Of a stretch of DNA of 64,000 nt, positions 10,201 through 38,426 are shown piece by piece; position 1 is the first letter of the stretch; every line of letters begins with the position of its first letter. Position numbers and translations under genes: made by a program. The stretch spans positions 30,814,001-30,878,000 of the forward strand of contig OZ004607.1 in NCBI GenBank assembly GCA_963924565.1. Reading direction: 5' to 3'. This DNA comes from Ascidiella aspersa. Lineage: Eukaryota. Below the pieces are notes generated by a model. It saw nothing but the letters and a program-made list of their open reading frames with translations. It ran no database searches and was not told the DNA's origin.

Positions 10201-10805
10201 ACCAAATAAAATGTATTTATATGATAAATAGCCGCTCGTTGGCCTCTCCGGCATCGCAACAAACAATAGAAAACCGTCATTCGGTTGAAGTTTTTGCCAA
10301 CACACTTTTTCAACTCGAAAGGGAATCATTCTTGGATGGATTAACGGGATTATAATGACTGCCTTGTTTTCTTTTTTTTCTTTTTTATCAATTTACAATT
10401 TTAGTGCGCATGATAAACAAAGCAAAGCGAACCGACAAAACATGATTTGCATATGTATGAGCAAATATTAAATTAATAATCCAAATACCAGAGCTATAAT
10501 TAAAAGAATAATTCAAAAGAAAAAAGATCGTTAAAGAAAAAAGATCGTTGGCTGTAAAAATAATTACCTGGAATAAGTTGCTGCTCAAAACAATATTCTA
10601 CTTAACTCAGTTGCAGCTTCTAACAACATGGGCCTCCAGACTACTAAATCAAGTGTCTCATTTACAACAAATATATTCACAATGCTTGATATTATAAACA
10701 GAGAAATGGTAAAATATATGCGGGAGCAAAGTAAACCGGACACTTTTAGTACTTATGCTTTTCGCGGTCCTATTTTAATCCAAAACTTTTATCTTTTTTT
10801 CGTAG

Positions 10806-10928
10806 AAGAAAGTCGGTATCGACCTTGAAGAATCGGCCAAGGTCACTGAGTCGATCCAGAACGACCAAGGTCACAAGTTCACCGTCCCGAAGGGCATACG
10901 CCCCCTGCTGGCCAAACACAGGGTCGAG
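10806..10928 (+). CDS. OTOF: otoferlin exon, phase 0-0 (NAGNAG acceptor 10805/10808)
   Basis: cgtag|AAG...GAG|gtgagt; ...FTVPKGIRPLLAKHRVE, matching the ferlin VP.GIRP.L.KYRVE motif. Confidence 0.93.
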
Positions 10929-15815: not shown

Positions 15816-16124
15816 TCAAATGTACAGCGAGCAGGACGAGTTGAGCCGTACCCAGTCGTCGCAAACGTAATGCATCTGCTTGGAGTCAAACAGGCGACAG
15901 TTGCGATACTTGCCGGTGCCCTTGATCAGCTCATCGTGCGTCAGCGTGAATATGGCCTTGTGGTTGCTCTTGGTTATTCTGCACTTACCGGGAGGGTGCA
16001 TGTCGAAGACCGGCTGCTTGTACTTGCACTGGCCAACAAAGAAGAACTGGTTCATGCCGAACATCGACAGCAGGTTGACAGTTGCGCCCGAGCGGCGGTG
16101 CTGCGCCGTGGTGGGAGTGAGAAC
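15816..16124 (-). CDS. NTL1 exon 3: neurotrophin/Spaetzle-like cystine-knot domain, stop
   Basis: cttggcag|GTT; VLTPTTAQHRRSGATVNLL...NQFFFVGQC...PGKCRITKSNHKAI...DWVRLNSSCSLYI*; AATAAA on the minus strand near 15387. Confidence 0.85.
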   Translation of the reverse strand, partial: VLTPTTAQHRRSGATVNLLSMFGMNQFFFVGQCKYKQPVFDMHPPGKCRITKSNHKAIFTLTHDELIKGTGKYRNCRLFDSKQMHYVCDDWVRLNSSCSLYI

Positions 16125-16128
16125 CTGC

Positions 16129-16389
16129 CAAGATGAAACAGCATTCGATTGAGACAAATGTCTAAACTCGTGTCACTTGTAAAATAACCTTAGATCCGAG
16201 GTCATTATTAAAAAATTAAAGTATCTGACCAAACAATTTACTCCCATAGTAGGTTAAGCTATCAAGATGACACAGCATTCGATTGAGATAAATGTCTCAA
16301 CTTGAGTCACTTGAAAATAACCTTAGATCTGAGGTCAGGTTTAAAATGTAAAGTACCTCACCAAGCAAGTTACTACCATAGTAGGTTCA
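16129..16389. repeat. tandem duplication with 134-bp period
   Basis: caagatga(a/c)acagcattcgattgaga...ccatagtaggtt occurs at 16129 and 16263. Confidence 0.9.
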
Positions 16390-17210
16390 CCCGTATGCAC
16401 AGGCGCATTGTGGATAAAAACACTTTTTTAGAATCTAAAAGTGATTCGTTACACTTGATGGTGTTTTATTTTGTAAGATTTTGCTTAGGGTGCAAACGAA
16501 TTTTCCCCTTACGTTTCATTAAGCGGCGAAAGAATAGCAAACCCTTTTACGCGATTGTTGATTGAGGTGAGATAAAAATCAAAGTAGAATGACTTTTCCA
16601 GACGTCGGCAAACTGCGGCACTTTGAAAAGGTTTTTGTGGCTCTTCTATTTGAAGAGTAAAACCAAATATGATAGAAAGGTGTATGGTTAAACTATTTTC
16701 ATTTTATCTTGGACTGTTATTAATAATTTCGATTAAAAAACAGTGTTCTTCATTAAACACCCGCGTTAAACCTTGTAAAACATGGTTTAATTATTTGAAC
16801 TTTATTGAAACTTGTAAACATTGCAGTGTTACTGCTTCAAAGAACCAACATATATTAATAAATACTGTTCATCATTTGTTACCAGTGTTTCGAAAATTAT
16901 GTTGTTGCCTTCACAGGCCACTCTCACGTGATAAAACAAACTAACTGTTAATTCCGAAATACTTCTATCCATTTTATACGGGTCTTAAAACTTTTGGATT
17001 TTAAAGTGCGGCTCGTGTTGGATAATAGTTGACCCACCCCTGGTCTACACCATATGCTTGTACAGAAATATCGTGGGGATATAAAGAAAACAGACAAATT
17101 CCTAAAAATCATAGGTGATACTTTTATTAAATTTAAAGATAAACCAATTGCGCAATTCTTTGCCAACTCAGCACGCGTCGTTACCAGAAGTCCAGTACCA
17201 ACTGTTTAAA

Positions 17211-17530
17211 CAAGTAGTTCTCAACCGGGGTGCCGCGGCACACTATGGTGTCATTTTTAACACTCAAAGGCGCCGAGAGACATTTCAAATCCTTTAGAAT
17301 TGCAATTTTTGCTCTATTGGTAAACTTCTTGATACAATTTTTTTTGGTAACGATCATAGTGCCAATAATTAAAAGGGTTTGTCAACCTTGTTGTACAGTC
17401 AATATGCTGTTTCAATCTCGCTTAATGTAACGTTACAGTTAACCAATCAGCAAAAATACGAACAAGGGTGCTGCGAACTATTTATAACTTTTGTAGGGTG
17501 CCGCAAGCAAAAAAAGATTGCGAAATACTG
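17211..17530. mobile_element. degenerate Charlie-like MITE in NTL1 intron 2
   Basis: caagtagttctcaaccggggtgccgcgg ... gggtgccgcaagc...ttgcgaaatactg. Confidence 0.55.
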
Positions 17531-17560
17531 GTTGTAAACCCTTTTTTCTGTGTTTCATAC

Positions 17561-17737
17561 CGTGTACAACGTCGGGCACACGGCTTGCTGCCTGCGTATT
17601 CCCCTGTAGCTCTTGACGATCGGTACTCTGGACTCTGCCATCGGGTCCTCAGTGCTGTTTATGATTTCGTTGCGTTGAGCAAACCTTCCCCGGTTCTCCG
17701 TCAGAAAGTGGAAGAGCACTCCGCTTGGGTCACTTAG
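17561..17737 (-). CDS. NTL1 exon 2: pro-region, RGIRR cleavage site, first knot Cys
   Basis: gctttaag|CTA...ACG|gtatga; LSDPSGVLFHFL...KSYRGIRRQQAVCPTLYT; 177 nt, phase 0-0. Confidence 0.85.
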
Positions 17738-19013
17738 CTTAAAGCAAATTAAATCGTGTAAAACTTTGACTAAAAAGAAGCTGGCAAAAAACTTGTGCTA
17801 GACGCTAAATTAGCGTTGCAAGCGGTTTTAGATGCATATATCTTTAGTAAGTCAACATACCGATAGCCCTTTTAGTAAGTAAACTTCAGTTTAGTAAGTA
17901 TATCTTTAGTACGAAAACTGACAAAAGGGTCTTTTAAAGCGGTCGAAAGAATTGGCTTGGACCGCGAGTTAAAGTGCGTGGAACTTTTGTAAAATACGAA
18001 CAGGTGACGCTTTTTCGCGCCTTTGAGACATTGATAGTTTACGGAAGTTCTGTCTACATTCCAAACTGCTGTAAATGAAGATACTAGCTCGCAGGTGGAC
18101 GCGAAATATGTAGGCTGGCGTATCGAATTCGGATCAGATATGCATGTAAATATTGCTGGACTTGTTTTCACGGTGGTGCAGTGTCTCTATAAGCAGTTCA
18201 CTTGGGTGCATTGCCCAAAGAAGGCTTGGATTGTGATGCCTTGTTTTTCTGGTTTAATTTTTTTATCTAATCTGTTTACTTAAAATGATCAGTAGCCGTA
18301 TCGTTGTGAAAGTGCCTTTGGGCCAGGTTATGTTTGCTGTGAGTTTCACGCGTTGGTCAAGTTTTGGGCGTTTTCAGCTCTGTGCTGACCAAGTTTAACG
18401 GCTAATTAAACTGATGTTAAAATGTGCTAAACTCAAATATTGACTGGGGGTGAACGACCTGTTTCTCTCCAAATGTGTTAAGGCTATTAGCGCTTCTTTA
18501 CCGGTTAATACGTCGGTGTAACCTTGTTTATATGCTGTGTTATGCCTGCGGCGACTAGCAGCGAATAGCGTCGGTGCCTCAGCGGTAGGCCTACTTAGCG
18601 GAACTGGTATCCATGTCATCAATAAAGATTACACCTGTACTACTAGTAATGTGTATTGGGGTTAGCGACTACAGGCTAAAACTTTTTTTGGATCCACGTT
18701 ATTCACGAGTTTACTTCGTACTTTCCAAGCAATAACAGGTCGTTTTCGAAAACACAGCAACAGACTTATATGGAGACATAGTAATGATATTGGTCAAATA
18801 AATAAATGCAACTATAACTGCTCATTAAACACTGCTAAGATTGTCACCATGTGATAATAGCCATTGCTAAGTACCGTTATGTGTGCCAATCAAAAAATGA
18901 AGTAACAAAATGGTAAACAAACTAAACTTGCAAGCCCAAATAGTAAGGACAGGCTTTTAAACGACTGCAACTACAATTACTATAAAAGAGCGAAAGATGT
19001 CTGGTAGACCAAC

Positions 19014-19256
19014 CTGTTGCCAAGGCGCGGGCGTACACTTGTTGTTGAGAAAGAAGAACGCCAGGTCATCAGTCCTGTTTTTGCACGAGGGTATGCAGCT
19101 GTTGCACAGCAGGAAATTGAACAGGGTACTTGTGTCCGAGCAGCGACGTAGGCACCGCCGGCACTGGTCGTTGCTGCTGTGGTAGCCTTGTGAGCCCATG
19201 GCCGATGACGTCACGAATGACGTCAGGGCGCATGCGAGGCCCAGGATCGTTCGCAT
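19014..19256 (-). CDS. nested gene NTL1 exon 1: signal peptide and Cys-rich pro-region
   Basis: acaATG MRTILGLACALTSFVTSSAMG then CRRCLRRC-x11-CNSCIPSC; ends CAG|gttggt; 243 nt, GC3-rich. Confidence 0.82.
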
Positions 19257-19312
19257 TGTGACGACGCGTCGACTTCGCCGGAGTCCATCGGAGGCTGGCA
19301 GCAGTAATACTT

Positions 19313-19319
19313 CCATATA
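19313..19319 (-). promoter_or_regulatory. candidate TATA-like element of NTL1
   Basis: TATATGG about 63 nt upstream of the ATG at 19256; imperfect consensus. Confidence 0.35.
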
Positions 19320-21868
19320 GCGCTTTGGTCTGGTCGGCGGTTTGGCAGATACATAAAGAAGAACGCTTTGTCAGGTCATTTGTTCGGCTCCTTTACTTGA
19401 ATAGTGCCCTAGTTTTTCTGTACCTAAAGCCGATTTCGCCTGTAAAAGAAAACAACTCATTTTTTTAACATTTTTTTAACATTTTTAGCACGGGTGGCCA
19501 TGGCGTATGCTTCAGCAGTGGCACTTAACACTTATACTGTATTTTAATGGCACATTATACGTCAGAGCTGGAAAAGTTAAATACGTTTTCAGAAAAAGAT
19601 ACGCCAAATTTCAAGTGATTCATAGAGTAGAATATAACAAAAATTTAAGCAACTTATAACTAGTTTTTTAAACTGAGAAAAAGTTTTACTGAGATTACTT
19701 TTATAATCTAAAACATAAAATAACATAAATCATGGAAATAAAATAATTTAAAACAAAGCAATAATTTATTGACTTTTAAGCGTCTTCTTTAAACAATATA
19801 TCGCAATACTTGGTTTGTAAATATACAAATATGCCCAAATTGTCATACTTGAAAAACGTAGGTTAATGTTTGTGCGGCGAATCTGAATTGAATGTGAGAG
19901 TACCGAAACATATTTTTTTCAAAATATTTACTTTTGAGAAATGAAGTTGTCTGTCTTCAACATTGCGCAACTGCTACCTTACTTACGATATAACTGCTCG
20001 CATAGGACGAAATCGGGCAGAACAAGAGCAAAAACCAGTCGTGACTGTTTGTTTCCTAACTCTGTTATCCGAAATTCGCCCTACTCCGACGGAACAAGCC
20101 AAGCCACAGCAATACAATTACAGTCGTTCTTAATGCCGCCTATTGTTTTGCCAGTAACCACTCGACAGGAATTTAACCTTTGCAGTTTGTTGCTGTTTAT
20201 GGCGAGTGATCCTGCAAATACGCATATACTTCAATACGACACGCCTTGTCTCTGGAATGGAGAATCCGCCGCAGCTATGCTGTTTTGTTGATACATTTGA
20301 AATGTCTTTAACTGATTGTTTTCGTTTTTTCGTAAGGAGATTAGCATTAGAGCTACTCAACTGTCACAAGAAGTTTCGTGGATGTGCAAAACCACAAAAT
20401 GGCCACCAAGTCGCACTGAAACCTATTTAATTAAAACAAATCCGGGCCAAATCGGGATTTGCTTGCTTAAGCTTTCAACGGTATGATTAAGAGATGTTGA
20501 TCGACCTTAAAATGACATCAGCGCTTATAATATTGCTGTATCGGCCTGCTGCTCTGATCTATTTTTTCTCTTTTTCGTACAAGTGCACTGAGCTTAAAAG
20601 TTTTTTGAAACTTGGATCACAACGCCCTTTTTTGTTGAATTAAATCAGCTATTGACTAACGAGGATGCGGGCAGTTTAAACAAAAAATGTTCTATTTTCC
20701 TGTTTTTATTTCCCATTTAAACTGGTCCTGCCAAACTGTCTATTTAGTCTAGTTCCCAGGTCTGGAACCCTCCTATAACTCCGTGGCATGTTCCCGGCAT
20801 ATTTTCTTGCCATTATTACGCATAGGACAACGTAAGCGCCCGGCTACACTGCCACCGCAACGTAACTAAGAAGCGTGGGTGAAAGCAACTAGCAAGGCCA
20901 TCAGTGTTAAATCTCACTACCCGCCCAAGCAAAGACAAGCCTTGTGCAACTGCTAAACGGTTGCTGTGTACACTTTCTCACACAGCGACTGAATTCAACA
21001 TAAAACCTCCTATCAGAAAATGTAGACAAAATCCGGTCTCGCATGTATGCTGCGAAAGTCGACACCTACTAAGCGAAGTGCCGCAAAATGAGGAAATGTG
21101 CCCAGTATCGCTTCAACATTATACGTTCGATTAAATTATTGGCATAATGGTCGGCTCTCCTGACAGACCTGTGATACCGCGACGGGAAAAGTTGCAATTA
21201 GGCGACGAAAATTTCCAGCACGTCTAACCATGCGTGTCGTTTAGTGGTTAAAATCTGGCGGCGAAGTAAAGACAGGTTTAAATTAAATTCGCCACATTGG
21301 AAAAGTGTACAGATCACCTTATCAGGGCTGACATAGAATTCAGATTAATCATATATAGCATAAGGAGTTGAGGCGAATTTTGTGTCAACTAAATCCGGTG
21401 AAGACGAAAACTGTCGGTTGAGGTTTTACGGCGAAAGTTGGACTTTACCGGATTAAACTGCACGTGTGCATTCTTTGAAATCCAAATTTCTTCAGGGGAA
21501 ATTTTTCAGAGCTTTGCGGGCGTTTTCAATTCGCGCCCTTGTGTTTTGGAAACGGGCAATTGATTTTACTGTTTATCTGCTTGCGTCGACGACAACTGCA
21601 GAGATAGACCGCAGGCCGTATTGCCCCACAAACTTGACATTCGACAGCCTTGATAAAGACGCGTGGGCAAACTGGCAAACAGCAAACTCGGCGCGGACTT
21701 AATTGATTTTACCTGGTGCGGTTCCAAGATCTGTACCCTGCTGGTGTCGATCCTGTAAACACTGCTGCGCTGAGAAGGCGAAGGCCCACTTGCCTACAAC
21801 ACTGGCAAACATACTACAACTATGTACGGGATAGGATTGAGGGATTGTGCAAACCTGGTTCACATGCG

Positions 21869-22100
21869 TTAATCCAGGAGGAAATTCCCTGCATTACACA
21901 CAATTTGTTGCCGGAATAAACTCGCTTGCAAGTACGCACTTCGCCTGGGTTTGAGACAAGGCACAATGTGGTCTTGATGTACCCTGTGAGTTGGTACACC
22001 ATTTCCTTGGTATGTTAATAAGCAGAGCACTCGGGACAGGTCAACAATTAGTCTGAAAGTTTTCACCTAACGTCAAACTTTTTTCCAGTTGTAAGCCTGC
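21869..22100 (-). mobile_element. possible decayed gypsy-type pol C-terminal fragment
   Basis: VKTFR...LTY...HRVHQDHIVPC resembles the post-integrase SH3-like motif. Confidence 0.3.
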
Positions 22101-25100
22101 GCGAATATGAACGTGGTGGACAGAATAGCAATTCTTTCTATCTGATATCGTTGCGGTGACTGCACCCCACCGAAAAGTAATTTAGGATCCATCTATTTGG
22201 CAACTATTTTAAGCTTTAATTAAACCTTCGGCGCTGACTATTATGAATGTTTTGTTTAACCAAAGTGGAAGTATAAGCTTCCATTTGATGCCAAGCGGAG
22301 GATAATAAACTGGAGTGTACTGGTTTTCCAGGTTACTCAAGTTCCTTTTAAACTTAAAACCGCTATTTTTCCATCTATTATATAAATATCACCCCAAAAC
22401 AAATCTACATAAAAAAGAAACGGCGTTCCTTAATAAAACTTCTTGAGTTTTTAGTCTGTGGCTTGATACCAGTTTGTTTTGGACAGCAATATTCCGAGAA
22501 CCAAAAACGCGCGTATGACACCCAGCGAATTTTTATTTGCCCGTCTCATCTCAGTTTGCCTTGATAGGATTTTCACTCTCCAAACTATTCTTCTAATGCG
22601 GTTGTCCCGTGACAGCGTGTAAGCAAAACCAAAAAATGCGACTATGTGTTCCGATTTCGTGTGACCATTGTGGTCGATATAAACAAATTATTAGCGCTTT
22701 AAAATCTGTAGCGTTTAACCACCTATAGTTAAACGTATGTGACATCGTAAACGGGCGATCATAACTGTTTTACCCCCAGATATTTAAAAAATCATTATCT
22801 TAACCAGGTTTTTTTTTAAGGTTTGGTTTGGGTGACCGCTAAGTAGTTTTAAGAGACCGCACGTGTTTCATTTAAATACCAAAAAGTTGCAAGTCCAAAA
22901 TTTGGGAAACCGCTGGAGAAATTTGGGGGACCGTTTCGGTCTAGTTCGATCCTTTACAAGTTCGATCCTAGTTACCTGCATATATTCACACGCTTTTGTA
23001 TTAAAACTACAATATGACAAACTACATCAAGGCAAACACTATAAGCAGTTGGGCAAACATGCCCGGTAAAAAGCCTGTCAATATGCTTTTAATCTGGAAA
23101 GTCGACCTTTCACCAATTATAGTTCCTTAATCATCAAAATACTATGTAACGGAGATTATTATTCTTGGGTGAACATTCTCGAGCCTATCCAAGAGTGTTA
23201 CTGCCAGGAAGATAAAAATGATTCAGTTATTTTTTTACCTATATTTACAATTTTATAATTGTCTTTTTACGACTCAAAAATTTCCCTTTCTGATACGGGC
23301 GAAATAAACTTGTAATTCCTGTTTTATTTTTAAACGAAAATTTAAAACATTTGTTTTGTAACATTAAAAAAAAATCTTTTTTTTATGCTTTTTTAATTTT
23401 GACTTGTTGGGCATTAAAACGTTTCGAAAGATTACACTTTAAAAAAATAGCATATGATAGAAATATTGAGCCGACTTGTGTTGTTTTGATCAGCTTAATC
23501 AGCTACATGCAAACTTTAAGAACCTGTCCTGCGAGTTTTAGGCTAGACTCATTTTCGCTGATATATTTTATCTTTTCTAGCTACATGCTCTAAACCACTG
23601 GCCTTTCTGCATTCCGTGCTACAGTTACGTGGACGTACAAATTTGAAGGAGGCAGCAATGACAGTACATAAAAATATGGCATATTTGTAATTTTATTTAT
23701 CAGCTAGTACATCTATTCTACTCCATACACTGTAAATAAAAACCGTGAGACTTTCCACCAATGAAGGTGGGCCCCTTAAAACATCCTATAGGATGGACTA
23801 GCAACACCTTTTTAAATCACAGTGGATCTTTCCACCCTAATGTTTACCACAAAATGTGGTGGAAACTTCAACCATTATTGTAAACCCATTTCGTAGTAAT
23901 TATCGGAAAAACAATTCCAACTCCGTTTTCCTCTCGAGCTATGCGCACTGGTCTGTTTTAGATTAAACGAATTAGAACAAGTTTTAAACCAACAAGGTTA
24001 ATTTTCCTCTACTTTACATTACGGATGTAATAACGTATTGCTGGTCAACTTTGGCACTTGGAAACTACAATGTCTGCCCTTTCTGATATCTTTTCTGATA
24101 TTGCTTACTCTTTGACAATCTAAGCGAAATATTGCTGTTATTTATTAAGCTCCACTGGGCGTTAAAATCTGAACTTCTTGGCGTTTGCGAGAACCACAAA
24201 TACACACTTCGTTGTTACCGCGATAAAATAGTATCACCCTATATAGGTACCACGACCTTAGCTTAATTTGACCAGGAGCGAACGTCGTCGCGCTTCATCT
24301 AAACGTACTTGACTGCCTGTCGGTTGTTGTTTGTCTGAAAGGGCAAGATATTGCCAGCAGCAATCTGCCTGCTAATATCCTGCCCAAGCCGCCGATACAA
24401 GCCAAAAGTCCGACGCAGATTTTTTGGCGGTCGAAAGATAGTGCGATTGCGGCGGCGCAAGTCCAACATTACCTTCTGACCCTGTTCCTGCTTCGCGGCC
24501 AAATCCTCACTCGGTGCCATCTCTAACTACAAACAGCGGTCCTGGCTGCCCTGGGTTCGAATTCTTTTGGAGTCAACTGCGTATAGACGAACAACAGCGT
24601 TTTGACTCGTGGGGTGGTTTACGCAACATTTTACAGTTCGCATTCGGTTTAGGTTTTGTGCGACGTTATAAAGAAAAAATCAGATGAAATTGTAGCGACG
24701 GGGATAGTGCTTGTATTAATACGGCCAATCAAAGTAAAGCTGTACTCATGAGCGTGACAAATTTGATTAGATACATTAACGATCTAGTTGCATTACTGAC
24801 ACTCTACCAAAATCACCAAAATCCGAACGTTCGTCTTCAAACAAGGCCGTTATGACGCTGGACGCAAAATGAATTTGCGCCGTTTGCGCACCTTGTGGAA
24901 AACCCCCAAACGTCAAGGGTAACTCAGGGCGTGATGACGTCAATAAACCGTCAATTTTGGATTCGACGGCTGCTGCTCCCGGAGAAAAGTGTTTCGCTAG
25001 TTTGCTGATGCGTATTATGTATACCTATACAACTTATATAAGGCCCCGCTCGTGTATAGGTTTATTTATAGAAAAAACACGCAGCCGATCGCACGTTAAA

Positions 25101-25898
25101 GATCGCTATCTACAAGACGTACTCTTTTCTGACATTTTTACAGGAAATAAGTGTTTCTATACCTCGTATAGGCGCAAACATCGCCCCGGTTGCAAAAACG
25201 ACGCCCGATATTTCGACGTCATTTGTGACGTCATCCTATCAACGCTCAGTCGACTAAGCTCATATTTCGGCGGATGATCCGCGCTTGTTAAAAGGCGAGC
25301 GGCTCCCGTCGTCCACAGTCCATGCTTTTCGGGTCCTATAAAGACTATAACAATGTCTACACTTTAGGTGGCTTTAACGCCGGTAGCAGCCAGATTGGCT
25401 ATATACTTGTCTGTGGAATCTTTGCCTTGTCATGTAGAAAAACAATAAGGCTTACACAAAAACGCAAGACTGCCGAACCTGTTTAGGCAACAACATTGTA
25501 ATGAGTGTTTTGATTAGTTCGGACTCTTTTTAGGCCGCTTTTGATTTCCTGAGCGTTTCGTTCTCGGCGTAAAAACAGGCTCATCTTTCGCTTTGGCCTC
25601 TTGTAATATGTTTACACTGCGACGCTCGTTAAATCTGCCTAAGAGACGAAAAGCAATGCAACGCTGGGAAGCTCCCGCCAAAGATTACGATCTGGTCTGC
25701 GCTTTTTGTACGGCGAAGAGGGGGCTTTCCGTTGAAATCAATCCCCTCGGGTGCTTCTTATGATTAGTATTTCGCGTGTGACAAGATATATGGTATAGTA
25801 GGGTGTCGTACTAGGCCTTAAAAAAGCCGTCTGTTCGTGGTATTTCGCTATAATTGTTACTCGATTGAAGATTAAATTTTGTCCGAACCTAATGATGG

Positions 25899-25961
25899 AT
25901 ATAACGGAGTGTTGCTCTTCCAGCAGAATATATATATATGAAGAGCAACACTCTGTTATAT
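25899..25961. repeat. 22-bp inverted repeat (hairpin) with (AT)n loop
   Basis: atataacggagtgttgctcttc / gaagagcaacactctgttatat, one G-T pair. Confidence 0.85.
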
Positions 25962-28900
25962 AATATGCCTGGCAACAATAGCTTATCTAATGATGGATAT
26001 TATACACTGGTTCATTCTGGAGGTCAGATTTTTGTAGCAACTTTTTCTTTGGTAGCGCATTTTGCTAACCAGTCGACGAACCAGTTTTTAGATTCCTGCT
26101 ATTTGCAAAACAACAACCCGTAACCGCACAATATCCATACACCAATTTTGCTCGTTGATGCAACCGCTGTACATTGTTATTTTCAGAGACAATTTACCAA
26201 GCGTGAAAGTCCCCCGATAACTCTAAGGACCGTATATCGTCCACGCACCATATATTTCTTCTTTTGAAACGTTTGAACTAAATGGAATTTTAGCTGGACT
26301 CGTCTGCAGTGTAGATGGCCTGAAACGCGCTAATTTATTCGCAATTACCTTTTTTGCGTAAGTTTTCTTTTTTTCATTTGTAGCGCACGTCATTGTTATT
26401 GGATTGAAGCCTGTAAGTAGGTGTTTTCATGGTTTTAATCCACGATAATGGCGTCCGTATAAAACATATATGGAGCTTGAGCAGACACATTCGACGGATG
26501 GTACCGTGTTAGTTGAACGTGTAAATGGTTTGCAGTATATAAAGGAAACTTGGTCAACTAAACTAAAAACGTTTTTTTTGTCCATTTGTTTATGTATCAC
26601 ATTGATGAAACACTCGTCACACGACACATTTTATAACTTTTTTTATCAGAACACCTACTTTGGCAAAGTGAATTAATCTTTAGTCTTCAACGTCCAAAAT
26701 CTAGCCACCATCGTTGAAACCTTAAACTTTAAAGCCGTGGTTCTTCAAATTCAGCATGATGTTCTTAAAAAAAGAAATTAAAAGCTGGGGTGCAGCGGTG
26801 GCGATCAAGTGCTGATTACACAATCTCTCTTGTAGCTGTGCGCCTTAGACGGATAAGATGTTGCTCGTCGATTTCGGAGGCTTTTACCGTACGATGAATA
26901 CCTTTACTGACGAAGGTTATTCTGTTATAACAAGTAGCAGCCTTCTATGATCGATCGATCGGCCTTCGCTTGGACCTTAGATGCCAATCATTTTTTTTTC
27001 GCCTCACCGACCAATTATAACACGCCAGGCGCCAGTTTGGCGTTTTCACAGATCCGAAAATCAAAAATAGTATCAGGGCGCCTGTTTTCTCCTATCAATG
27101 CAATGTATTTTACTTTATCACTGCCACATCATCGACCCGAAGCGTTTTATGGGGGGATATTTGTTCGACCAGAAAGCTTACGTGTACTGCGTTGCTTAGA
27201 TCCAAGGTTTCTTGTTAGTCATACCGTCAAAGGACACGTTAAATTTCATATATTGCAATGCTTATTCATTTAGGATTTTAGGTTATTTTTATGACTCTGT
27301 GGCTAAAATGATGACGCGAGTAGATCAGATGAAACATCAACCTCATGAAACACTTACGCGTATATTCCAACTTTATTCAGCAGACCTACAAATTAAGGAT
27401 CACGTTTCCAGTTCAAACTGTTAAACAGTGTATAAGAAACCGAAATATTAAAAATCAGATGCTAAACGGACTCGTGCGTTAAACAATTTTCTGCCAGACT
27501 TTTTTATAATTCATCACGAACAAACCGTCAGCGGATACATAGATTTAATCAAGTTTACGTTGCGGTTAAGGGGGTTCGTCCAGTATAAACCAGTATAAAC
27601 ATAATCCGAATACAATCAAAACTCATTTTTTTCTATAAATAGACACAGAAATTTCCCAACAGCCAGTTTTAGTGCTTGATGACAGCTTGTATGAATCATC
27701 CGCTTTATTACGGCCGGCACATGTGCATTTACATAACTGAGTATTCGCGGCACTTTCGCAGTGCTAAGCCTTGGACAAGGCCGCTACTGTTGAGCTATTA
27801 ATAACTCAAGCAACTCAAACTGACGCCGAAAATATTCGTGAAAAAAATTCGGGCTGTAAGCGTTTGAAATATCGGTGGGTTATATTTTAGCTTGTGTACC
27901 TAAGAACCGGAATTATTTACAAACTAATACAAATTATTATGTTAGATTAAATTTGTCGCCAAACTGTGTCACCCTGATTTTAAAATGCAGAATTGCAGAA
28001 ATACGGCTATCAACCTAGAAATGCGTTGAGAAACTTTTACCACACACGCATGTTACCATAAACATTCAAATTCGCTGTTAAATGAGTGTTTATCTCTACT
28101 AAAGACATCCATTAAAAAGACTAAGAACGTGGTTTTTAACAGTTAATAATTATAAATTGTTTTTTGTTTGTTCAACTTAGGCATATTCGATTGAAATATT
28201 GTTCTTCGCGACGAGCTCCACCTGGTGGCCAAATAATCGCCTTAAAAACTCTTGAAAACGCTCGTTTAGAAATAACCCAGTCTGATTTATATTCATTACC
28301 TAATGACATCAAACTAACTTCGTGACTGCACCTATCTGTGAAGGTTTGGGCCACTTAATATTCACTTTCGAAATGCAATCTAGTGTTGCAGTGCTGCACC
28401 GGCTGTCAATTAGCGTTAATTACTTCAATTTCGCCGAGTAGTACAAAACAGCTAAACCCTGCACTTAGTTTGACAGGCGCCAATTATCCAATGCTCCTCG
28501 TCTGCAGAGGGATGTTGAATTTACGAGTGACCACCAGAGAAGGCGTACTGAGATGGCGTTCAATTCGAAGAATTATTATTTTTTTCAAAATGGCGGCTGC
28601 GCGTAACCCGACTCTCATGGGAAACAGCTTGTGTTTCAATCGTCCAATATGGCTTGGTGCAAACCTACGCGCAGTTCTGTTTACGGTTTCTTGGAATATA
28701 TGCAGTACTCTCTGTGCTTTTCTGCTCTGGGTCGCACGGTTTGAAAGAAGTTTAACAATGTTATTTATACTGCTACACAAAATCTGCAGGTTATCTTTTG
28801 AGATGGAGACCTAACACTCAAATATTAATATACTTCATCTTGTCATAAAAACAATTTTAGCGACACATATGTTTTCGGTTTAAGTCTCTGAGGGTCCGTT

Positions 28901-30249
28901 ATTATAAATTTTTCCATCAGTATTACAAACCATATATAGCATACGTTTTCGTACGGTATCAGGTTTTAAAAATTCATCTTTGTCCCTTGTAAATTAAAAA
29001 GATTAAAAAACAAAAAAAAACAGAGACAAACAATTTCGGTTGTTCGGCTCTGTTGTAAACGGAAGCGTTTTTCATCTTTTTTCTACCTAACGGCACACCT
29101 TTGGACTTTTAAACCTGGCAACACACCTAACGAGCTAAGTGAGCTCTAATTTTGTTTGGACAGAACGGTATTTTCCTTAAACACGTTTTTTTTGTATTTC
29201 GTATATAGGGCTCATAGTTCTTTACATTTAAATAGCTGTTGGATGAATAAGCTAAGCCGAGAGAATGTACAAAAGGATAAAAATGATATATTTTATATTT
29301 TAAAATATTTTTCCTCTTGCCCTCGGCGCACCTGGCAATATTCCATGGCGCAACGATTAAGAAGCGCTGGTATAGTTTATGGGACCTATCGTATCTCTGA
29401 CACATCTGACAAGACGTAATGTCAAACACCACAATGCAGTATCCGAAGTTTTTTGCGCCCAGGCGGTTTTAAAGATTTATCTAACGTAAATAGTTGTAAC
29501 ACGATATTTATCTTCAAAGACATTTTTGCATACAGTGCTAACCGTATAGTTGATAACCGTTTATGACCGTAAATTGAATCGCGTTTAGGTCTTACTAAGC
29601 TTCACACAATTTTTACACAACAAGAAAATGCTACTACCTAAATTAAAATAAGACAAACCAAATGCAAAAGAAGAGCAATCCCTTTGCACTTTGCTAAACA
29701 CCCTTTACATTTTCCGAACACTTTGATTTAGTGCCAATATACCGGTTTTTGCGTCTTCCGGAACAGCACGACTCGAGGGTCTTTTCGTATAAACACGGGC
29801 TTTGCGAGCGAAATCTTGTTCAAAATTGTCATCGCGGTCGCTTTATCACCGTCTGCCATCGGCCGAGACGAAGTTGCCTGCATGCCAATATGCCCTACGT
29901 CGACTTCACGTGGCTAACGGCTGACGAGTACGTTTCCAAGTCGAGACTATCGCGAACGCCAATCGCGCAGCCATACCCCGGAGCTGTTAATTTTTTGCAA
30001 AATCCGCTGTAAAGCGATTTTGTCGAGACGCTTTCTTAGATTCCGCTCAAGCGATACTCTGCTGCCGATTAGGTAACGCACGTATTTCGTTGCGAAATGC
30101 AAGGCTTCAGCCGTTTTTTTGGTCCGTCGTTGCCATATCTGTGTCCCACAGTCGGGTAGCTTACCAGTTGACGGAGCTAAAACAGTGCTCATGTTATAAG
30201 CCATGCCCTTGGTAGGTAATACTGTTTCCAAGAAAATTTATTCTTTCTC

Positions 30250-30550
30250 AGTCGCAATTGGAAATTACAATTCCTATTCTATCCAATACCTTCAGAGCAA
30301 ATCCTGATATATCCTTTATCTAAATTAAAACTGCTTAAAAATCAAAAACAATTATATTATTCTGGTGCTGATTGCTAAACTGGTGGTCTCACACTCCATT
30401 GCTGACAGATGCCTAACACCATTCAACAAGAAATTCCATCTATTTCAACCCTTAACTGCCTTCCCAAAAAAGTCAAACTCTTATTAGGACATTAAAACTT
30501 GTCTAACATTCTCAATACTGACCCGAGCATGCTCGTCTAGATCCTTACTG
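30250..30550 (-). mobile_element. decayed LINE (CR1/L2-like) reverse transcriptase fragment
   Basis: FLGRQLRVEIDGIS resembles the FL..R.QRV.I.G..S RT motif; surrounded by stops. Confidence 0.45.
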
Positions 30551-31689
30551 AGCGCGTACCAACAGATGGCGTAAGTTAACAAGGCAACTTATCACCAACC
30601 AGCAGAAGGCAGCTCGTCCCTATTTAACAACAGCGCACACGGGCCGTCTGCAGGCTCCAGGGCTCGACCGCACATCAGGCCCGGAGCGCAATCCTAACCT
30701 CTGACTTGAAATGTGCAGCGGCGGGCGCGAAAATCGTGCGATAACAAACGAAGTCTCTTGTGCTCGCTGGCGACATCATAATGCCAGACCGGTGGCCAGG
30801 AGGGTGGGACGCAGGTGGCATCCGTATCTGAATGGACTATGCTGCTCATAGTTGTCCTATCGTGCCCTTTTTGTCAAATTCGGCTAAGTATAGGAGTTGG
30901 AAGTTGGTACTATACTGTCGAAATTATACAATGCTCAGGAACCCTGAGTGTGTGTATACCTAAAACAAATGCTAGACTATTGTAAGAAAATATGCCTCCC
31001 AAGCGGTAACCATGCCACTTTTAAACAACATAAACGCCAAACGGATTTGATAAAATTTTACATTCCAATTGCTTATTTCTTTTGATATTTTTAAACAAAA
31101 CAAACATAGTGTCGAAAACCGAGTTTCGCTTATTTTTGGCGGCTCACCTTTTATGACACAACTCTCGAACGCACAAAAGGAACGCCTGCTTTCTTTTGCC
31201 AGTAACAACAAACGGCTAAAAAGTACCCCGCGATTGGGCCAAAACCTCGGGGAAATTTGGTCACGTGATCACCACAGACTTTCGCTAGTCAACATAAACC
31301 GGACTAAGCGGCCCTAAACCGCTGTAGCTTCGCGTTCTTTCGTCGTTTTCTCCCGCAATAATAAGCCCTCACAGCCGGATTAAGATCTGCCAAGGCAAGA
31401 GTGAAACCGCACCGTCAAAACACGTATTTGGCCAGTATGCAGCCTGGAAAACCCGTGTTGAAAATCAAAAATGCATTTTACAGGGGATCTGAACTCATTA
31501 CTTTTCTTGGATCCCGTTTCTGATTAGGCCTTGTAGTGAATGGATTTATAGAAAACATAGTCTCCCTGCTAGGAAAAGCGCTAACAACATGTTCTCTCTG
31601 GTGGACTTTCGGTTTACTATCAGTTTTACATTGGTTGCACTTTTGCATTACTATTAGGGACAACGTGCATTGACCTACATCGCCTAGTG

Positions 31690-32179
31690 CAGCGGTTCTT
31701 AACCTATGGGTAATTACCCACATGTGGGTAATTTCAGTATATCAGGTGGGTAATTATAGCTAAGCCAGAATATTTAGAATTATGGCTGTAACAAACAATG
31801 TCACAGCTGTAAGTGGTAAGTTGCTTTATTAGTTACACTTTTTTGTTTTGAGTCCTTTTATTTTTAAAACAACCAAACAAGCAAAAGGAAATTTTATCAT
31901 TTTTACAATTGGTTCGTCCTAGTGATCATTTTTGTGGCCGGTTTTACGTATATGTGACCTAATAGTAAGATTTTTCTTGTATCCGCTAACGGCTATAGCC
32001 TAGCTATTTTTTCATAATCAGTTTGCTGTTAGTGTTTATTTTTAAAGGTATTCTTAGTGGAGTTGTTTACAGTAGTACACAGTAGCTGTAAGTTTGCATT
32101 GGATAAAATTAGATTTTGCTAATGCGACTTTGATCTGCACAGAAATGGGTAATAAGAGAAAAAAGGTTAAGAACCCCTG
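31690..32179. mobile_element. hAT (Charlie-like) MITE
   Basis: TIR cagcggttcttaacct / aggttaagaacccctg; TSD gcctagtg / gcctaatg. Confidence 0.85.
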
Positions 32180-35100
32180 GCCTAATGGGAATTGAATTTT
32201 GAAATTTGTACTTGTTTGCAGATATTAACATCTTGTAATGTACAAATTGACTTCTCCCGCTACGAAGAAATAAAAATACCATATGATTTTATTAAAAATA
32301 AAGCCCATAAGACATAACACCGTAAGGTTTTAATTAAAACTATACGACCTACAAATTTCGTGCCGTACAAGATTCACGTAAAAAATGTCGAAGCATAGTC
32401 CAAGAATTTTTAGCAGCGGGCCGTGTGTTTCGAGCGCTTGGAATTTTGTACAGAGAGGTTGTGAATAATTGGTTCGTGGCTCGGGAAATTTTCCTGTTTT
32501 GTGTTGCCCAAGAGAAAACCATAACAACGAGAAAAAAGAGAACGATAGCGTGGAAGGCAGTTTGTACAAAGCAGGAAATATCCGTCGAAAATGGCTGAAA
32601 CCTCCAACCAAATGGCGGTTTAATTTTGTTCATTAGGGCCTTAAATATGAAAGACTCATCAAAGATATATGACTCGCAGACGCAGTAAATGTAGCTTTTC
32701 GCTAGGGGGCATTATAGCGCCGGAATTTATATTTAACATAAAGTGTGTTATTTGTCAACAGCAACGATCGTCATCACGTATAGGTTTGGTTTCGAAATCA
32801 AGTTGCATTGAAATAGTTTTTAGTTTATATTCTTAGAATAAAAAATGAAATTAATTACTTTAAATACATTATCGAATAATGCGATGATTAATAATATTTT
32901 TTGGTAATATCACAAACGGTCGCTTCGCTATATATAATTGCAATTTGCATATAGTTTCGGAAATGCACGACTGCTAAACACAGAAAGCGATTAATACGCT
33001 GAAATATGATACTATATAGATATATTATTCTGAAAATTGCCAGGAGTGTACCTTACAAAAGTTGCTATAGGCCATGAATATATTATATACACTGAACGAT
33101 TACGTCGTCTGATTGGAGGTTACTATTTGCTGATTTTTCTCGGTGACAACAGCAACAAACTCGAATGAACGAAGGCGAAAATTACAAGCAAAAATACCCT
33201 CATTTAATTGATGTAACGGCAGGTATTCGATTTACGCACTGAGTGCATTTGCCGTGCGACACTTAATCCCGAAAAGTTGCTGACACGTCGCTTTCGCGCG
33301 ATCTCTAATCAGTCCGGGCAATCTTAATGGCGTCGGTTTGCATTTACAGCATGCGATAAACAAAAGAAATATTTGGGATTAAACCTGATTCCAGTTGGAA
33401 TTTAGGTTTCAAGATCTGCTGATGTATTTATATCTAAAGCAACGTTGGTATTTTACTCTGAAGTATGCGCAACGTCCAATTTGCATTCTCTGGTCTTACA
33501 CGTTAAGGGAATTTGTTTTTCAACTGTAACCTATATGTTCAGGAAAACAGACCCGTATATACACTAATAAACCTCAGCACTTCACTGTTAAACAAACATT
33601 GCGGCAGGTGGTTGGGGGAATTTTTGCTGTTATGTTGTGTACTAATGGTATTTTCGAGTTAATTTTATTGCACAATCCTGGTCTGTCATAACTTGTCATC
33701 GCTCGTTTGAATTATTGTAAATTGTATTTTCATATTAGGGAACGAGTCAATGGCCACTCAACTATCGCCCGAATCCCCCACTCAATTATAAAGATTTGAG
33801 ATTTTTAGTCTTAACCGGAAAACCATGTTATTACTTTCAGTCGTAAGTGGGTTGTTAAATAGTGACAGAATATATTTCAAAATTCATTAGAAATAAACTA
33901 ACTGGAGATGTATACAGCCTCATTACATGTGTTCGACTATGGCGTCAGACCCAAAATATTGTGTTTTATAACTTTACTAAAGTAATTTTTTCCTAACGAC
34001 TTGACTTGCAGGCAATTTGATGACTGAGGCCTACTTTGATTATATAGATGACCTGGCATGACCTAAATTAAGTCTTTTAATTTAATATGTTTTCGTAAAA
34101 TGGGTTATTTGCATGAATTAAATATTGTGATTATTATTAAATGCAAAAATCGGACTTGAACTTAAGTTGTTTTGCTAATGACTTGACTGGGACAAGTAAT
34201 TTTAAAATTACGTGTTTGCAACACTGTCAAAGGACAGCATCGATTGCGAATAATGCACCGTGTATTTCTTGTATAAAACGCAGAGTCTAAAAAGACACGG
34301 AAAACTAGAAATGTAAAAGGGCACGCGTGAATAGAGAGAGATACAAAATGCAATAAATATTGTGCGGATTGCGCAATACAACAATAAAAAAAGAGAAAAA
34401 ACGGCATTTAAGGCGCAAAGGGCAACGCTCACAGCAGTATACGAATAAATTTGTGACCGAAAAACTTGGTTTAAGGGTCAACCGTCTTAACGTTGCATAA
34501 CAAGTCGAAAAAGCAATTTTTAGTCTGCTGAGCTGCATGGAGAATAGTAATTTGCAAGCGAAAGGTTTATATACTAGTGTCGGGAAGTTTCTGGTGCAAA
34601 AAAGCATGAGGCTACCATTGTGGAGTAGCAAAAGTATAAGGTTGCATTTTAGACAATCAAAAAGGTCTACAAAAAAGAAACGCTATGTGTAAGTCTGTAT
34701 ACTAACAGCGCGGTGAAGAAATGTGCAGTATGAAGAAAAATTCGTTTCTGTAAATTCGGGTCCGCCCAAGTCGGGCTTGGTCACTTAAAAAAGTAGTAAA
34801 AAACATCGGGTGCAAATCGTCGGGCGGAATTCTTATATTCAGAGTCTTTGTGAGACGTCTTCATTAATAGGTTGTACCATTGCGGCACGACATGCATTCG
34901 ATAAATTACGAAGAAAATCGCCCATTGTGCAATTCGCGTTCCCAGCTTATTATCACCATTTGCACGTCTTACGAATTGCGCCATGCCATCGAATTATGAT
35001 GATTGCTATAAACGGTAAGTGTGAAGCACGATTAAGCAAGAAAGAAAACAAAAACGGATTGCAAACGGTAGATGTGAGCACACGAGAGCCGCAGAGGGGG

Positions 35101-35505
35101 TTAAGACGGGTTGGTGATGCTTACCAAGGCGCATTAATTAATTTTCAGGATTTTACACATTTTTTCTTGAATCCTTATTACGCCTTACATTGGCACTTAA
35201 CCCTTATTAGGCATGTGTAAAAATAACTCGACAAGGGCGCTTGGAAAAGTAATAAAGCTGATCGGTTGCAATCGCCATTGCGGTTCAACCGCCACTCGGC
35301 GGGTTTGTACAACCATATAAATCTAAATTTTTACGGCGAATCTCTTGGCTCGCTTGGGTTGCTTCGGAGAAAAGTGCCACCTGGGTCGATGAACATTCAT
35401 ACAAAAAACAGCTTTCAGCACTTGGAAAAGTGTAGCTTGCGTCATCTCACACACACCCATTTCACTTCAGTCAGTCGATTGTCCCTTTGACATTGTTAAG
35501 CGTTT

Positions 35506-35745
35506 TCAGCACTTCGATTTGAAGGAAGCCGGTATTTTAAGAGTGCAAGCCCCTGGGAGGACAACCGACTCCTTACACCTTACCAGGTCTGGGAATTTGT
35601 CCAGGGTGGTGCAAAACCTGGGGTTGTTCCTGGGACCGTCTCGTCGCCGCACCACCCAGGTCTGGTGCTTATGGGGCACGGTCTTGCAGCGCCCAGGCAG
35701 GTTGAACCGCGGTGAGGCGTGAGTGCACGAGCCGACTTGGAATTG
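35506..35745 (-). CDS. NTL2 coding exon 3: remainder of cystine-knot-like domain, stop
   Basis: tttcgcag|CAA; QFQVGSC...PGRC...C-x11-C-x9-CTLKIPASFKSKC*; Cys spacing shared with NTL1. Confidence 0.85.
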   Translation of the reverse strand, partial: QFQVGSCTHASPRFNLPGRCKTVPHKHQTWVVRRRDGPRNNPRFCTTLDKFPDLVRCKESVVLPGACTLKIPASFKSKC

Positions 35746-36070
35746 CTGCGAAACAAGAAAGTGAAGATTGTTAGCGAAATGTTTTAATGGTTGCGGATAA
35801 TTTACAATTGGGGCCAAAAAGTGCCAAAGTTACATTCGGGGTCGTTTAAAATGTTATGCGTTTTTCATCATTTTATTTCTAAGTTTTTTTATAAACTTGA
35901 ATTTGTTATGCAATTTCTGACAAAATACAGCCTCGTGCCAAAGTGTTGGTATGTTTTACCGTCCTATTTCGATTTTGTTGACATCAAGTCCTGTGGACTT
36001 GAATTATCCTTTATATATGATGTAAGTGATTAATCTGCATGATTTTTTCATTATTTAAAAAAATACTTAC

Positions 36071-36142
36071 ATCAAAGCCGGGGAGAAGTACAACGGTTTC
36101 GTTGGGGTAGAACGCCGACATCGCGGTTGGTTCCGTCTTAAG
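36071..36142 (-). CDS. NTL2 coding exon 2, phase 0-0
   Basis: ttttccgcgcag|CTT...GAT|gtaagt; LKTEPTAMSAFYPNETVVLLPGFD aligns with NTL1 VLTPTTAQ...TVNLL. Confidence 0.85.
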
Positions 36143-38288
36143 CTGCGCGGAAAATCACACAGTTAAAACAAATAGCAAACAATAAACAAGAAAAGACAAG
36201 CAAATTTACATGAAAAATAATCCACCAAAAAGCGAGTTTTTACAAGTTCTTTAACAAAGCACTAGTTTTGCCGATAAAGCAACACCAGCAGCACATCGTC
36301 GCCACTTTAATAACGAACGAGCAACATTTTCTCCAACATTTTTAGGACAAAAAACAGCCACATCTTATCAAACTATAGCAATTCATTGGAAGCAAAAATG
36401 GGCTGTCGGCCTTTTTAAATAGTGGCAAAATAGTTTTGCGATGGCTTTCGGTGTACTAAACATGAAGCCTTTGCTATTTCGATGCCGTCACAAAAGCTAC
36501 AATCACGTGACCGTCTTTCGCGCGGTCCAACGCGGCGCCAATTTTATGGAAGTCACGATCTGTGACGTCACGCAGGGTCGAGCGTTGCTGCGCGGTGGCG
36601 CAATTAAAGGGTGGCAATTTGCGCGCGGGCGAAAGGTTGAAGGGCGCGCCCCAAATAGGCTTTGGGTTGAGGCCAGACGAGGTGGAGATTAGAAACGGGA
36701 CCCAGGGATTAAAATTGCTTCTTTCTCGGAAGTTCCTAAAGACGCAGACTCCCAGGGTTGCTCAGGGCATAGATTAGAGCCTTGCTCGGTTAACGAGCGC
36801 TGTGTTATTAAAAAGAACACTCCCCCTGTGATCAGAACGTGCGAGACAAACTACGCTACATTTTCCACCTCATCTTTTTTTAAATAGCGTTACGCGAGAA
36901 AAACAGGACAATTAAACACACCTTCACTTCGTTTTACAATACGAGAAGCGTGTCTTTAACTTTGCCCAATTCCCATTTTAAAAACGTTGCCCTATTCCCA
37001 CTATAAATTACAAAATTACATGCAAATTGGCCTTTTAATAGTGTTCGTCGCCAAACAGGCCCGCTTCTGTATTTGGCAGAAAGGCGCCTGTACCTTCGCT
37101 GCAGTGTAATTAATATGGTAGCAAAGTGTCAAGTCATCGTTGACACCATATGGCATCGGTTTCGAATTTGGTGATTCGGCATATTTCTCTGCAGCTTTCT
37201 GTGAATATGCTAAAATCGACTATCCGCGGCGAATGATGCCACACGTTTTCCAAAACATCTCGAATTTTGAGTTTTTGTTGGTATACTGATTTTAGAATTA
37301 TTTTAATTTGGTATTTGGGAACGCTTTCTATGCCCCGACCATTGTGGTTTTTATTATCTGGACTTTTTTGTTTAATCGTGTTTAGCATTTACAAACACTG
37401 TTCAACAATATTAATGCCGGTAAAACAGGGCGGAAATAACGATTTTTCCACACAACTTAGTATTGTACGTTTAGATCAAGTATTTTTCCCGCCGAATTTG
37501 AGTTTCATAACAAAATTACAGAAGAACACCTTTTGTAAGTCGCGCGCCGCCCTACTCGAGACCTTGTTTATCAGTTTGGTATTCACGGAAGCTACGAGAT
37601 TACTGAGTGGACATTCTATCGCACATGGTTCTTTAGGCGCGCATACGCCTACCTAATCCTAAGCTTGCTTTCGGATTGTCGGCGATTTCGAACCAGGTTA
37701 CGAAAAACGTTGAAGCTTGTACGACCAAAGGCGCTTTATAGTGCTTTAATCGGACGAGATGGGAATAAAGAGAGTTGACTTATTTTAAAACCGCAGTGCC
37801 ACTGGTCTATAGTAATTAACTTCTCGGCCCTGTTTTAGGATATCAGTGGAAATCTACCCAGATTTGGATCAATGCGACCCATTATATTAATATACCGTAT
37901 TTGCTCAGTTCACCTCGTTTACAGGCCAAAAAAATTTGACCTTTGCAACGGTATGAGGCTTGGGCCATTAGCCATTTAGACTGACTTTAATTAAACGGCA
38001 TCGGCAGGTTGTAATGCATACACATACATGTGTAAACTACTTAATTGGGTCGTTTATTTTTGCTTAAAAAGTCTAGTAAATTCTGACATTTGGTAAATAG
38101 TTTTTTTTTAACTCCGATTAGAGGACATTTTTTACCAAGCTACTTAATTAGTTTTATTCTTGATATTCCACAATGACTTCAGGGAAATAGTTTTTAACAC
38201 CGATTAGAGATTATTTTAGAGCTTCTCAACAAGTTTTATCCTTGTCATAAGACAACGATTTGTCTTGTTCGGTTTTATTTCGACTTAC

Positions 38289-38426
38289 CTCAAACGTGGT
38301 GGGGCAAGGGGTGATGTATTCTTCTGTTGCAGTAGATAGGGGGTTAAACATTCGGTTTATAACCCCCGCGTCGATTCCGGAAGCCAGGATAACAACAGTC
38401 AACGCGATGATCTTCGTGATACACAT
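38289..38426 (-). CDS. nested gene NTL2 coding exon 1: signal peptide to first knot Cys
   Basis: aaaATG MCITKIIALTVVILASGIDA-GVINRMF...PCPTTFE|gtaagt; 138 nt. Confidence 0.85.

Follow-up and report, generated by a model that had tools for sequence, protein, structure and literature searches.

The window analysed here is a stretch of 64,000 nucleotides from the genome of Ascidiella aspersa (contig OZ004607.1 of assembly GCA_963924565.1, positions 30,814,001-30,878,000 of the forward strand), and the coordinates below refer to this window unless another source is named. Two genes for candidate neurotrophin-like ligands, NTL1 and NTL2, lie antisense in one 39.3-kb intron of a plus-strand otoferlin gene. 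Both have complete three-exon models on the minus strand in which every intron is GT-AG and of phase 0, and the predicted proteins have 81 + 59 + 102 = 242 amino acids (NTL1) and 46 + 24 + 79 = 149 amino acids (NTL2). A first-pass annotation had described two models with three coding exons, GT-AG introns and these lengths, each with a signal peptide. The models hold as described, and the N-termini of both proteins are hydrophobic and signal-peptide-like on inspection. The exons are the following.

19014-19256, minus strand: NTL1 exon 1 (coding), 81 residues, with the predicted signal peptide and a cysteine-rich pro-region; RNA covers 19006-19398.
17561-17737, minus strand: NTL1 exon 2, 59 residues, with the motif FL-ENR-RF--NEI, a dibasic RR and the first cysteine of the domain (AVCPTLYT); RNA junctions on both sides.
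15816-16124, minus strand: NTL1 exon 3 (16124-15819 plus the stop codon at 15818-15816), 102 residues and stop, with cysteines 2-6 and the bulk of the predicted neurotrophin-fold domain.
38289-38426, minus strand: NTL2 exon 1, 46 residues, with the predicted signal peptide, a short linker, the first cysteine of the domain (CPTTFE) and a GTAAGT donor.
36071-36142, minus strand: NTL2 exon 2, 24 residues (LKTEPTA...VVLLPGFD), bounded by AG and GTAAGT, with a counterpart exon in the Clavelina protein P0004.
35506-35745, minus strand: NTL2 exon 3 (35745-35509 plus the stop codon), 79 residues and stop, beginning QFQVGSC, with cysteines 2-6 and a seventh, C-terminal cysteine.

NTL1 has the layout of a prepro-protein, namely a hydrophobic N-terminus, a pro-region of 130 residues and an RR site that precedes the first cysteine of the domain (Cys1) by four residues, while NTL2 has a signal peptide, ~20 residues and then the domain, with neither a pro-region nor a basic site. 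The cysteine-rich pro-region of NTL1 is kept within the family described below. In exon 1 it resembles P0014 (E 7e-4), and exon 2 of NTL1 resembles an exon of gene B of Clavelina lepadiformis, the NTL1 orthologue there (E 2e-5). The seventh cysteine of NTL2 (..FKSKC, 35509-35532) is missing from Clavelina and the other NTL2-type orthologues, and it may form an interchain disulfide or be unpaired.

NTL1 is transcribed and spliced. The RNA evidence covers the NTL1 region of the window (15600-19500) and comes from two sequencing runs, X4, which is RNA of the same species, and X2, whose library kind is unrecorded and which we treated as RNA on the basis of its spliced contigs and its exon/intron depth. 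The junction 16124|17561 was found in one X4 read and one X2 contig, and the junction 17737|19014 in an X2 contig. The depth of X2 over NTL1 is 52 in the exons versus 7 in the introns, i.e. about seven-fold. X4 reads cover all three exons and their first mates lie on the plus strand, which is expected of a transcript from the minus strand when the library is stranded in the standard way. The RNA level is low, with 13 reads in about 6% of the one RNA run. Three of the four coding variants observed in NTL1 are synonymous and one is non-synonymous (R to G), and the RR site is untouched. Both junctions of the NTL1 model are therefore confirmed by reads or contigs; the predicted splice model of NTL2 draws its support from the Clavelina RefSeq orthologue XP_076803755.1, whose three exons are arranged identically.

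Some further features of the NTL1 transcription unit were observed. Its 5' untranslated region extends to at least about 19398, short upstream open reading frames (ORFs) lie in 19256-19398, and an alternative in-frame ATG at 19316 would lengthen the protein by 20 residues. The four RNA reads upstream of the ATG all have GCA inserted behind 19297 and G in place of A at 19356. At 17172-17564, in intron 2, the word depth in the DNA runs rises from ~65-110 to 5,000-12,000 with many loose ends, which indicates that a very high-copy short repeat is inserted there.

NTL1 and NTL2 are tandem paralogues, as had been claimed from a C-terminal domain with six cysteines common to the two. Their last exons match each other in BLASTP with E 2e-6 and 27% identity, and all five cysteines are in register. 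An intron after CPTxx[TE] is common to both genes (CPTLYT| and CPTTFE|), the first cysteine of the domain being in the preceding exon, and the NTL2-type genes have one additional intron ahead of [QK]F-VG[ST]C.

All searches with NTL1 and NTL2 of the window were made exon by exon. A two-exon profile was run with HMMER against 1.84 billion representative proteins and returned 11 clusters at E <= 1e-3, so the family is far beyond chance. NTL1 exon 3 matches the hidden Markov model of the family with E 4e-39, and NTL2 exon 3 with E 2e-20. Just two members have a named source, Clavelina lepadiformis and Styela clava, and both are called "uncharacterized protein". The remaining members are ORF fragments of unannotated ENA, Logan and JGI assemblies, including Tara Oceans metagenome contigs. 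None of the database members carries a name or a Pfam domain, which bears out the suggestion that the family had been overlooked, and no publication on neurotrophin-like or Spaetzle-like ligands in tunicates was found in the literature searched. The following members are used below.

P0004: Clavelina lepadiformis LOC143447497 (XP_076803755.1), 154 residues, the NTL2 orthologue with the same three-exon structure.
P0005: Styela clava LOC120335761, 411 residues.
P0014: a full-length precursor of 329 residues on a 1.5-kb metatranscriptome contig.

The family consensus reads C1 ... P-x-x-A-x-H-x-S-G-x-x-V-x-L ... Q-x-F-x-V-G-x-C2 ... P ... C3-x(5)-H-K-A ... N-C4 ... C5-D-D-W-[VI]-x-L-x(3)-C6-x-L. 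In a tree of the family, which has long branches and is a rough result, four NTL2-type sequences stand apart from the rest with support 96/93, and exon 3 of NTL2 groups in this clade. A third member, NTL3, is encoded on another chromosome of the same genome and outside the ferlin gene.

G000:C8:11702708-11703094 (L025 1435-1902), plus strand: NTL3, with the whole domain in one exon behind RIRRRR.
L036 3043-3381: upstream exon of NTL3, encoding a signal peptide along with a pro-region of the pattern C-x3-C-x6-C-x3-C, which resembles that of Styela clava LOC120335761.

The family is thus conserved in tunicates, unnamed, and made up of at least three types, NTL1, NTL2 and NTL3. Other searches added no members. 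A search for homologous proteins with NTL1 exon 3 gave no match, in a length window of 56-178 residues that may exclude full-length relatives; the same search with the family alignment A2 gave nothing beyond three members already known; a metagenome scan gave nothing beyond two copies of the known P0001 locus; and NTL1 exon 3 had no usable match in the ESM Atlas. Three loci on chromosome C8 of the own genome were rejected as members, i.e. C8:11946456 (L007), which is of low complexity and misses the last cysteine, and C8:3604982 and C8:3605186, which have stops inside.

The intron that holds the two genes is bordered by two otoferlin exons.

10806-10928, plus strand: otoferlin exon ending ...LLAKHRVE, the 5' border of the 39.3-kb intron; its counterpart is 80% identical in Clavelina and 77.5% in the Tara species.
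50237-50395, plus strand: otoferlin exon starting VLFWG, the 3' border of the intron; three other species have exons 83-91% identical to it.

The best PDB match of the VLFWG exon is otoferlin (9qe2_A, E 8e-18), ahead of dysferlin (3e-9) and also far ahead of myoferlin. Looking into the same KHRVE|VLFWG intron elsewhere, as the first-pass annotation had proposed, we found homologues in three other species. In Clavelina the NTL2 orthologue (10001-12310) and the NTL1 orthologue (13402-16431, 387 residues) have the same order and orientation as in the window and, antisense to a ferlin gene, are flanked by its exons KHRIE (20424-20305) and VLFWG (7887-7726). This host gene encodes a ferlin of 2128 residues without DysF. 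The ENA contig ctg13937l has a VLFWG exon 4.8 kb upstream of an NTL2-type exon, with an NTL1-type exon 6.7 kb further, and one more assembly (L017) also has a tandem pair of NTL2 and NTL1 types. In Tara Oceans contigs of 23% G+C (L030/L031/L032) the KHRVE and VLFWG exons flank an NTL1-type gene; the Tara Oceans contigs with P0003/P0014 showed no detectable NTL2-type exon. Within the family, it is the NTL1 domain of this planktonic species (RQYFYETPC) that most resembles the neurotrophins.

This nested arrangement is unusually old, since one and the same otoferlin intron is occupied in four species (that of the window, Clavelina, that of the ENA assembly and the Tara species). The NTL2-type clade and the shared nesting together imply that the genes had been duplicated and nested before these species diverged. 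The intron position can serve to locate orthologues in the genome of any tunicate, including cases beyond the reach of sequence similarity. The same conservation bears on whether the genes work at all. One could suppose that the ORFs are non-functional, e.g. decaying copies or transcribed noise in a large intron, as the low expression of NTL1 and the restriction of the RNA evidence to that gene would allow. But the frames are intact, the splicing of NTL1 is precise, its coding variants are mostly synonymous, orthologues with the same exon structure and genomic position occur in the four species, and a full-length orthologue transcript is present in a metatranscriptome. We regard this explanation as extremely improbable.

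The fold was predicted with AlphaFold for the database protein P0004, the NTL2 orthologue, using a family alignment of 16 rows. The best model has a mean predicted local distance difference test score (pLDDT) of 82.4, with 87-97 per 10-residue block in the domain and more than 90 for the domain overall, and the five models have means of 82.4, 82.2, 81.3, 72.1 and 60.3. In a Foldseek search of this model against the PDB, about the first 35 matches listed are all neurotrophins (best E 3.4e-3; template modelling score normalised to the target 0.44-0.73), followed by IL-25/IL-17A, PTTH, coagulogen and Spz. Realignment of the Foldseek list with VIA-align gave Z scores of 8.7-10.2 for the neurotrophins (9.4-10.2 for NGF, NT-3 and NT-4), 7.1 for Spz1C and 6.2-6.7 for IL-17. 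For neurotrophin crystal structures Z is 9.1-10.2, with a root-mean-square deviation of 1.9-2.8 A over 85-100 residues, and residues 45-154 of the model match residues 9-115 of NGF.

A search of 48,161 chains made independently of Foldseek agrees with this, in that a Z of at least 8 was reached by NGF entries only (10.0 and 9.7). The runners-up are IL-17A (6.5), coagulogen (6.4), IL-25 (5.7), Spaetzle (5.4) and PTTH (5.0), and knots of the TGF-beta, DAN and PDGF types stay below 4.6. All structural matches with Z of at least 5 belong to the fold group of NGF, Spz, IL-17, coagulogen and PTTH. The P0004 model is predicted to have the elongated monomer with paired twisted beta-hairpins that is typical of the NGF fold. 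For this orthologue, at least, the structure searches thus point to a cystine-knot growth-factor fold, as had been anticipated, with neurotrophins as the best matches.

The sequences point in the same direction, though less strongly. The family profile matches only neurotrophins among all PDB sequences (NT-3, E 0.006-0.01; NGF, about 0.2), and in the HMMER alignment C1, C2, C3 and C6 fall on the NT-3 counterparts of Cys15, Cys58, Cys80 and Cys108 of NGF. The register read by eye in the first-pass annotation, in which AVC stands for C15 of NGF, QFFFVGQC for QYFFETKC and CRITKSNHKAI for CTTTHTFVKAL, agrees with this alignment. P0014 matches Pfam NGF (PF00243) with E 9e-4 and 19.8 bits, the gathering cut-off being 27. 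Every ESM Atlas neighbour of the P0014 domain is a Spaetzle, NGF, IL17 or Noggin cluster, and the Pfam-assigned ones (ten of ten) are in one clan. The window genes would be linked to the neurotrophins transitively, via P0014, which has the same intron position, lies in the same otoferlin intron and matches the NTL profile with E 5e-9.

Other profile searches gave no such link. The profile A1 had only chance matches in the PDB (mitoribosomal S9, sedlin), and Pfam run on the four larger window exons gave matches at chance level, none of them to NGF. Family members besides P0014 match no Pfam knot family, no member matches Pfam Spaetzle (PF16077) or IL17 (PF06083) at E 10, and a six-frame search of the own genome with Pfam Spaetzle found nothing above the cut-off. 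The sole match to Pfam NGF in six frames of the whole genome, at C8:11613901, is inside an unrelated ORF of 840 residues and was dismissed as chance.

The cysteine pattern is that of an incomplete knot. Four of the six knot cysteines of NGF are kept, and the equivalents of C68 and C110 are missing in all 17 family sequences, so the full set of C15-C80, C58-C108 and C68-C110 is not present. Two additional cysteines, C4 and C5, stand on either side of the last hairpin loop and hardly vary, if at all, across the family. Only 4-8 residues separate the basic site from C1, and NTL1 and NTL3 (the latter with RIRRRR) have the layout of a prepro-precursor. On the predicted model, the family would have the fold shared by the superfamily and at least two knot disulfides in the canonical places.

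On our analysis, the tandem paralogues NTL1 and NTL2 probably encode secreted signalling proteins with a C-terminal domain of ~105 residues in a predicted NGF fold. It is highly likely that the family belongs to the NGF/Spz/IL-17 fold superfamily. Direct descent from an ancestral chordate neurotrophin gene is plausible but unproven, and we put it a little below an even chance. We therefore call the family neurotrophin-fold or neurotrophin-like, and it is not a demonstrated neurotrophin orthologue.

A number of observations weigh against this reading. The C-x-C motif and the third knot disulfide are absent, and no window exon or family member is at or above any Pfam cut-off. The profile without P0014 and with NTL3 has no PDB match at E 10, so that the sequence link to the neurotrophins depends on P0014. 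The fold was predicted for the orthologue P0004 and not for the joined proteins of the window, and AlphaFold has seen many NGF structures. Its first model, from an alignment of two sequences, had a pLDDT of 40.6, and in a prediction of a two-copy complex of P0004 residues 45-154 the chain itself had no confident fold. The RNA evidence comes from NTL1. Finally, the receptors, which the first-pass annotation had also raised, were sought in six frames of the genome with the Trk-type LRRCT_2 domain (PF16920) and the p75 transmembrane domain (PF18422), and nothing was above the cut-off with these short, insensitive models. The latter is in line with the literature on Ciona, in which no neurotrophin, Trk or p75 is reported (PMC2772990) and the absence of neurotrophins is noted by a second paper (PMC13663574). 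The earlier proposal of a diverged neurotrophin/Spaetzle-superfamily ligand family is sustained by the tunicate source, the RNA junctions of NTL1, the predicted fold, the nesting and the unnamed family, with two reservations: the Pfam cut-offs of NGF and Spaetzle are not passed and one of the three knot disulfides is missing, and the sequence link depends on a single member.

Could the likeness be convergence or an artefact, i.e. a lineage-specific cysteine-rich beta protein forced by AlphaFold onto an NGF template with no common ancestry? The NGF E-values are indeed marginal (0.006 and 9e-4) and vanish without P0014, the alignment is shallow with its 16 rows, and a whole disulfide of the knot is wanting. 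However, four independent cysteines together with Q-x-F-x-x-x-C and C-K-x-x-x-x-H-K-A-L are in the register of NT-3, three of the five AlphaFold models have a mean pLDDT above 81, and the alignment-free neighbours from the language model are all from one clan. We find this explanation very unlikely.

A closer competitor accepts the cystine-knot superfamily and derives the genes from its IL-17/Spaetzle/coagulogen/PTTH side, with an overlooked IL-17 of the two-disulfide T1C type as one candidate. In T1C IL-17 the disulfides 1/4 and 2/5 are kept and 3/6 is lost (PMC11087794), which is the pattern of the NTL family, and Spaetzle/IL17 clusters head the ESM Atlas neighbours at 0.90-0.89, slightly above the NGF clusters. 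The reliance of the NGF sequence link on P0014 and the lack of a Trk or p75 signal in the genome would suit this origin too. The T1A/B/C types of IL-17 are, for their part, reported lost in tunicates and vertebrates (PMC11087794). On the other side, no member has a Pfam IL17 or Spaetzle match even at E 10 while canonical IL-17 exons of the same genome reach 62 bits, the neurotrophin Z scores are 3-4 units above those of IL-17, Spz, coagulogen and PTTH, and the PDB sequence matches are all neurotrophins though the PDB has many IL-17 chains. We consider such a descent unlikely.

If the neurotrophin-fold reading is right, NTL1 and NTL2 would be secreted, and NTL1 would probably be cut at RR by a furin-type convertase that frees the domain; NTL3 would be cleaved by a convertase as well. 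The missing C68-C110 and the extra C4-C5 lead us to expect the pairing C1-C3, C2-C6 and C4-C5, which would not be a true knot. By analogy with known ligands, the disulfide-stabilised, NGF-like protomer would probably then dimerise and bind a cell-surface receptor. We speculate, tentatively and with rather less than even confidence, that tunicates kept neurotrophins and that the family is their fast-evolving direct descendant, which lost the third knot disulfide, was duplicated to NTL1, NTL2 and NTL3, and signals without Trk via another receptor. Under the same tentative scenario the intron position has persisted in ascidians and in a planktonic species, probably a pelagic tunicate, and a common control of expression in mechanosensory or secretory cells might lie behind this.

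Neurotrophin signalling plays a central part in the construction of vertebrate nervous systems. The reported absence of neurotrophins from Ciona (PMC2772990; PMC13663574) has shaped views of the evolution of this system on the chordate stem lineage. A conserved and expressed tunicate family with the predicted neurotrophin fold reopens this question to testing, i.e. which receptor is used where Trk is absent, in which cells the ligands are expressed and whether they support neurons. What is new here is a tunicate-conserved family of ligands with the predicted neurotrophin fold and a core of two disulfides, which offers a naturally occurring "two-disulfide" form of the NGF fold.

Compared with known ligand families, the NTL family resembles IL-17, especially the T1C type, in its incomplete knot, where two canonical disulfides out of three would be kept (PMC11087794). 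IL-17 itself has a dimeric cytokine fold that is related to the neurotrophins. The NTL family differs from IL-17 in having no Pfam IL17 match and in a Z of 6.2-6.7, whereas seven canonical IL-17 exons elsewhere in the genome are above the Pfam cut-off with 46-62 bits. Three IL-17 exons at G000:C3:22170745-22202946 have a spacing of ~16 kb and equal scores, and C5:17721186-17728911 holds an inverted pair.

With Spaetzle and the Drosophila neurotrophins, coagulogen and PTTH/Trunk, the family shares the predicted superfamily fold, and Spaetzle clusters are among its ESM Atlas neighbours. Spaetzle, coagulogen and PTTH/Trunk are secreted, proteolytically activated cystine-knot ligands. The family departs from this group in matching no Pfam Spaetzle model at E 10, in Z values of 4.2-7.1 and in lacking the terminal C-x-C.

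Relative to the vertebrate neurotrophins (NGF, BDNF, NT-3 and NT-4), the family is without Cys68-Cys110 and C-x-C, carries two additional cysteines in the loop of the last hairpin, and is below the Pfam cut-off. Its cleavage site is just 4-8 residues from Cys1, its pro-region is cysteine-rich and missing from NTL2, and the coding sequence of the domain is split by one or two introns in NTL1 and NTL2. Yet it is the neurotrophins that it resembles in the predicted fold (Z about 10, with a root-mean-square deviation of 2.2-2.6 A over about 90 of about 105 residues), in Q-[YF]-F-x-x-x-C before Cys2, in C-[KT]-x-x-x-x-x-[VK]-A-L after Cys80, in W-x-x-[IL] before Cys108, and in the prepro architecture of NTL1 with its basic cleavage site.

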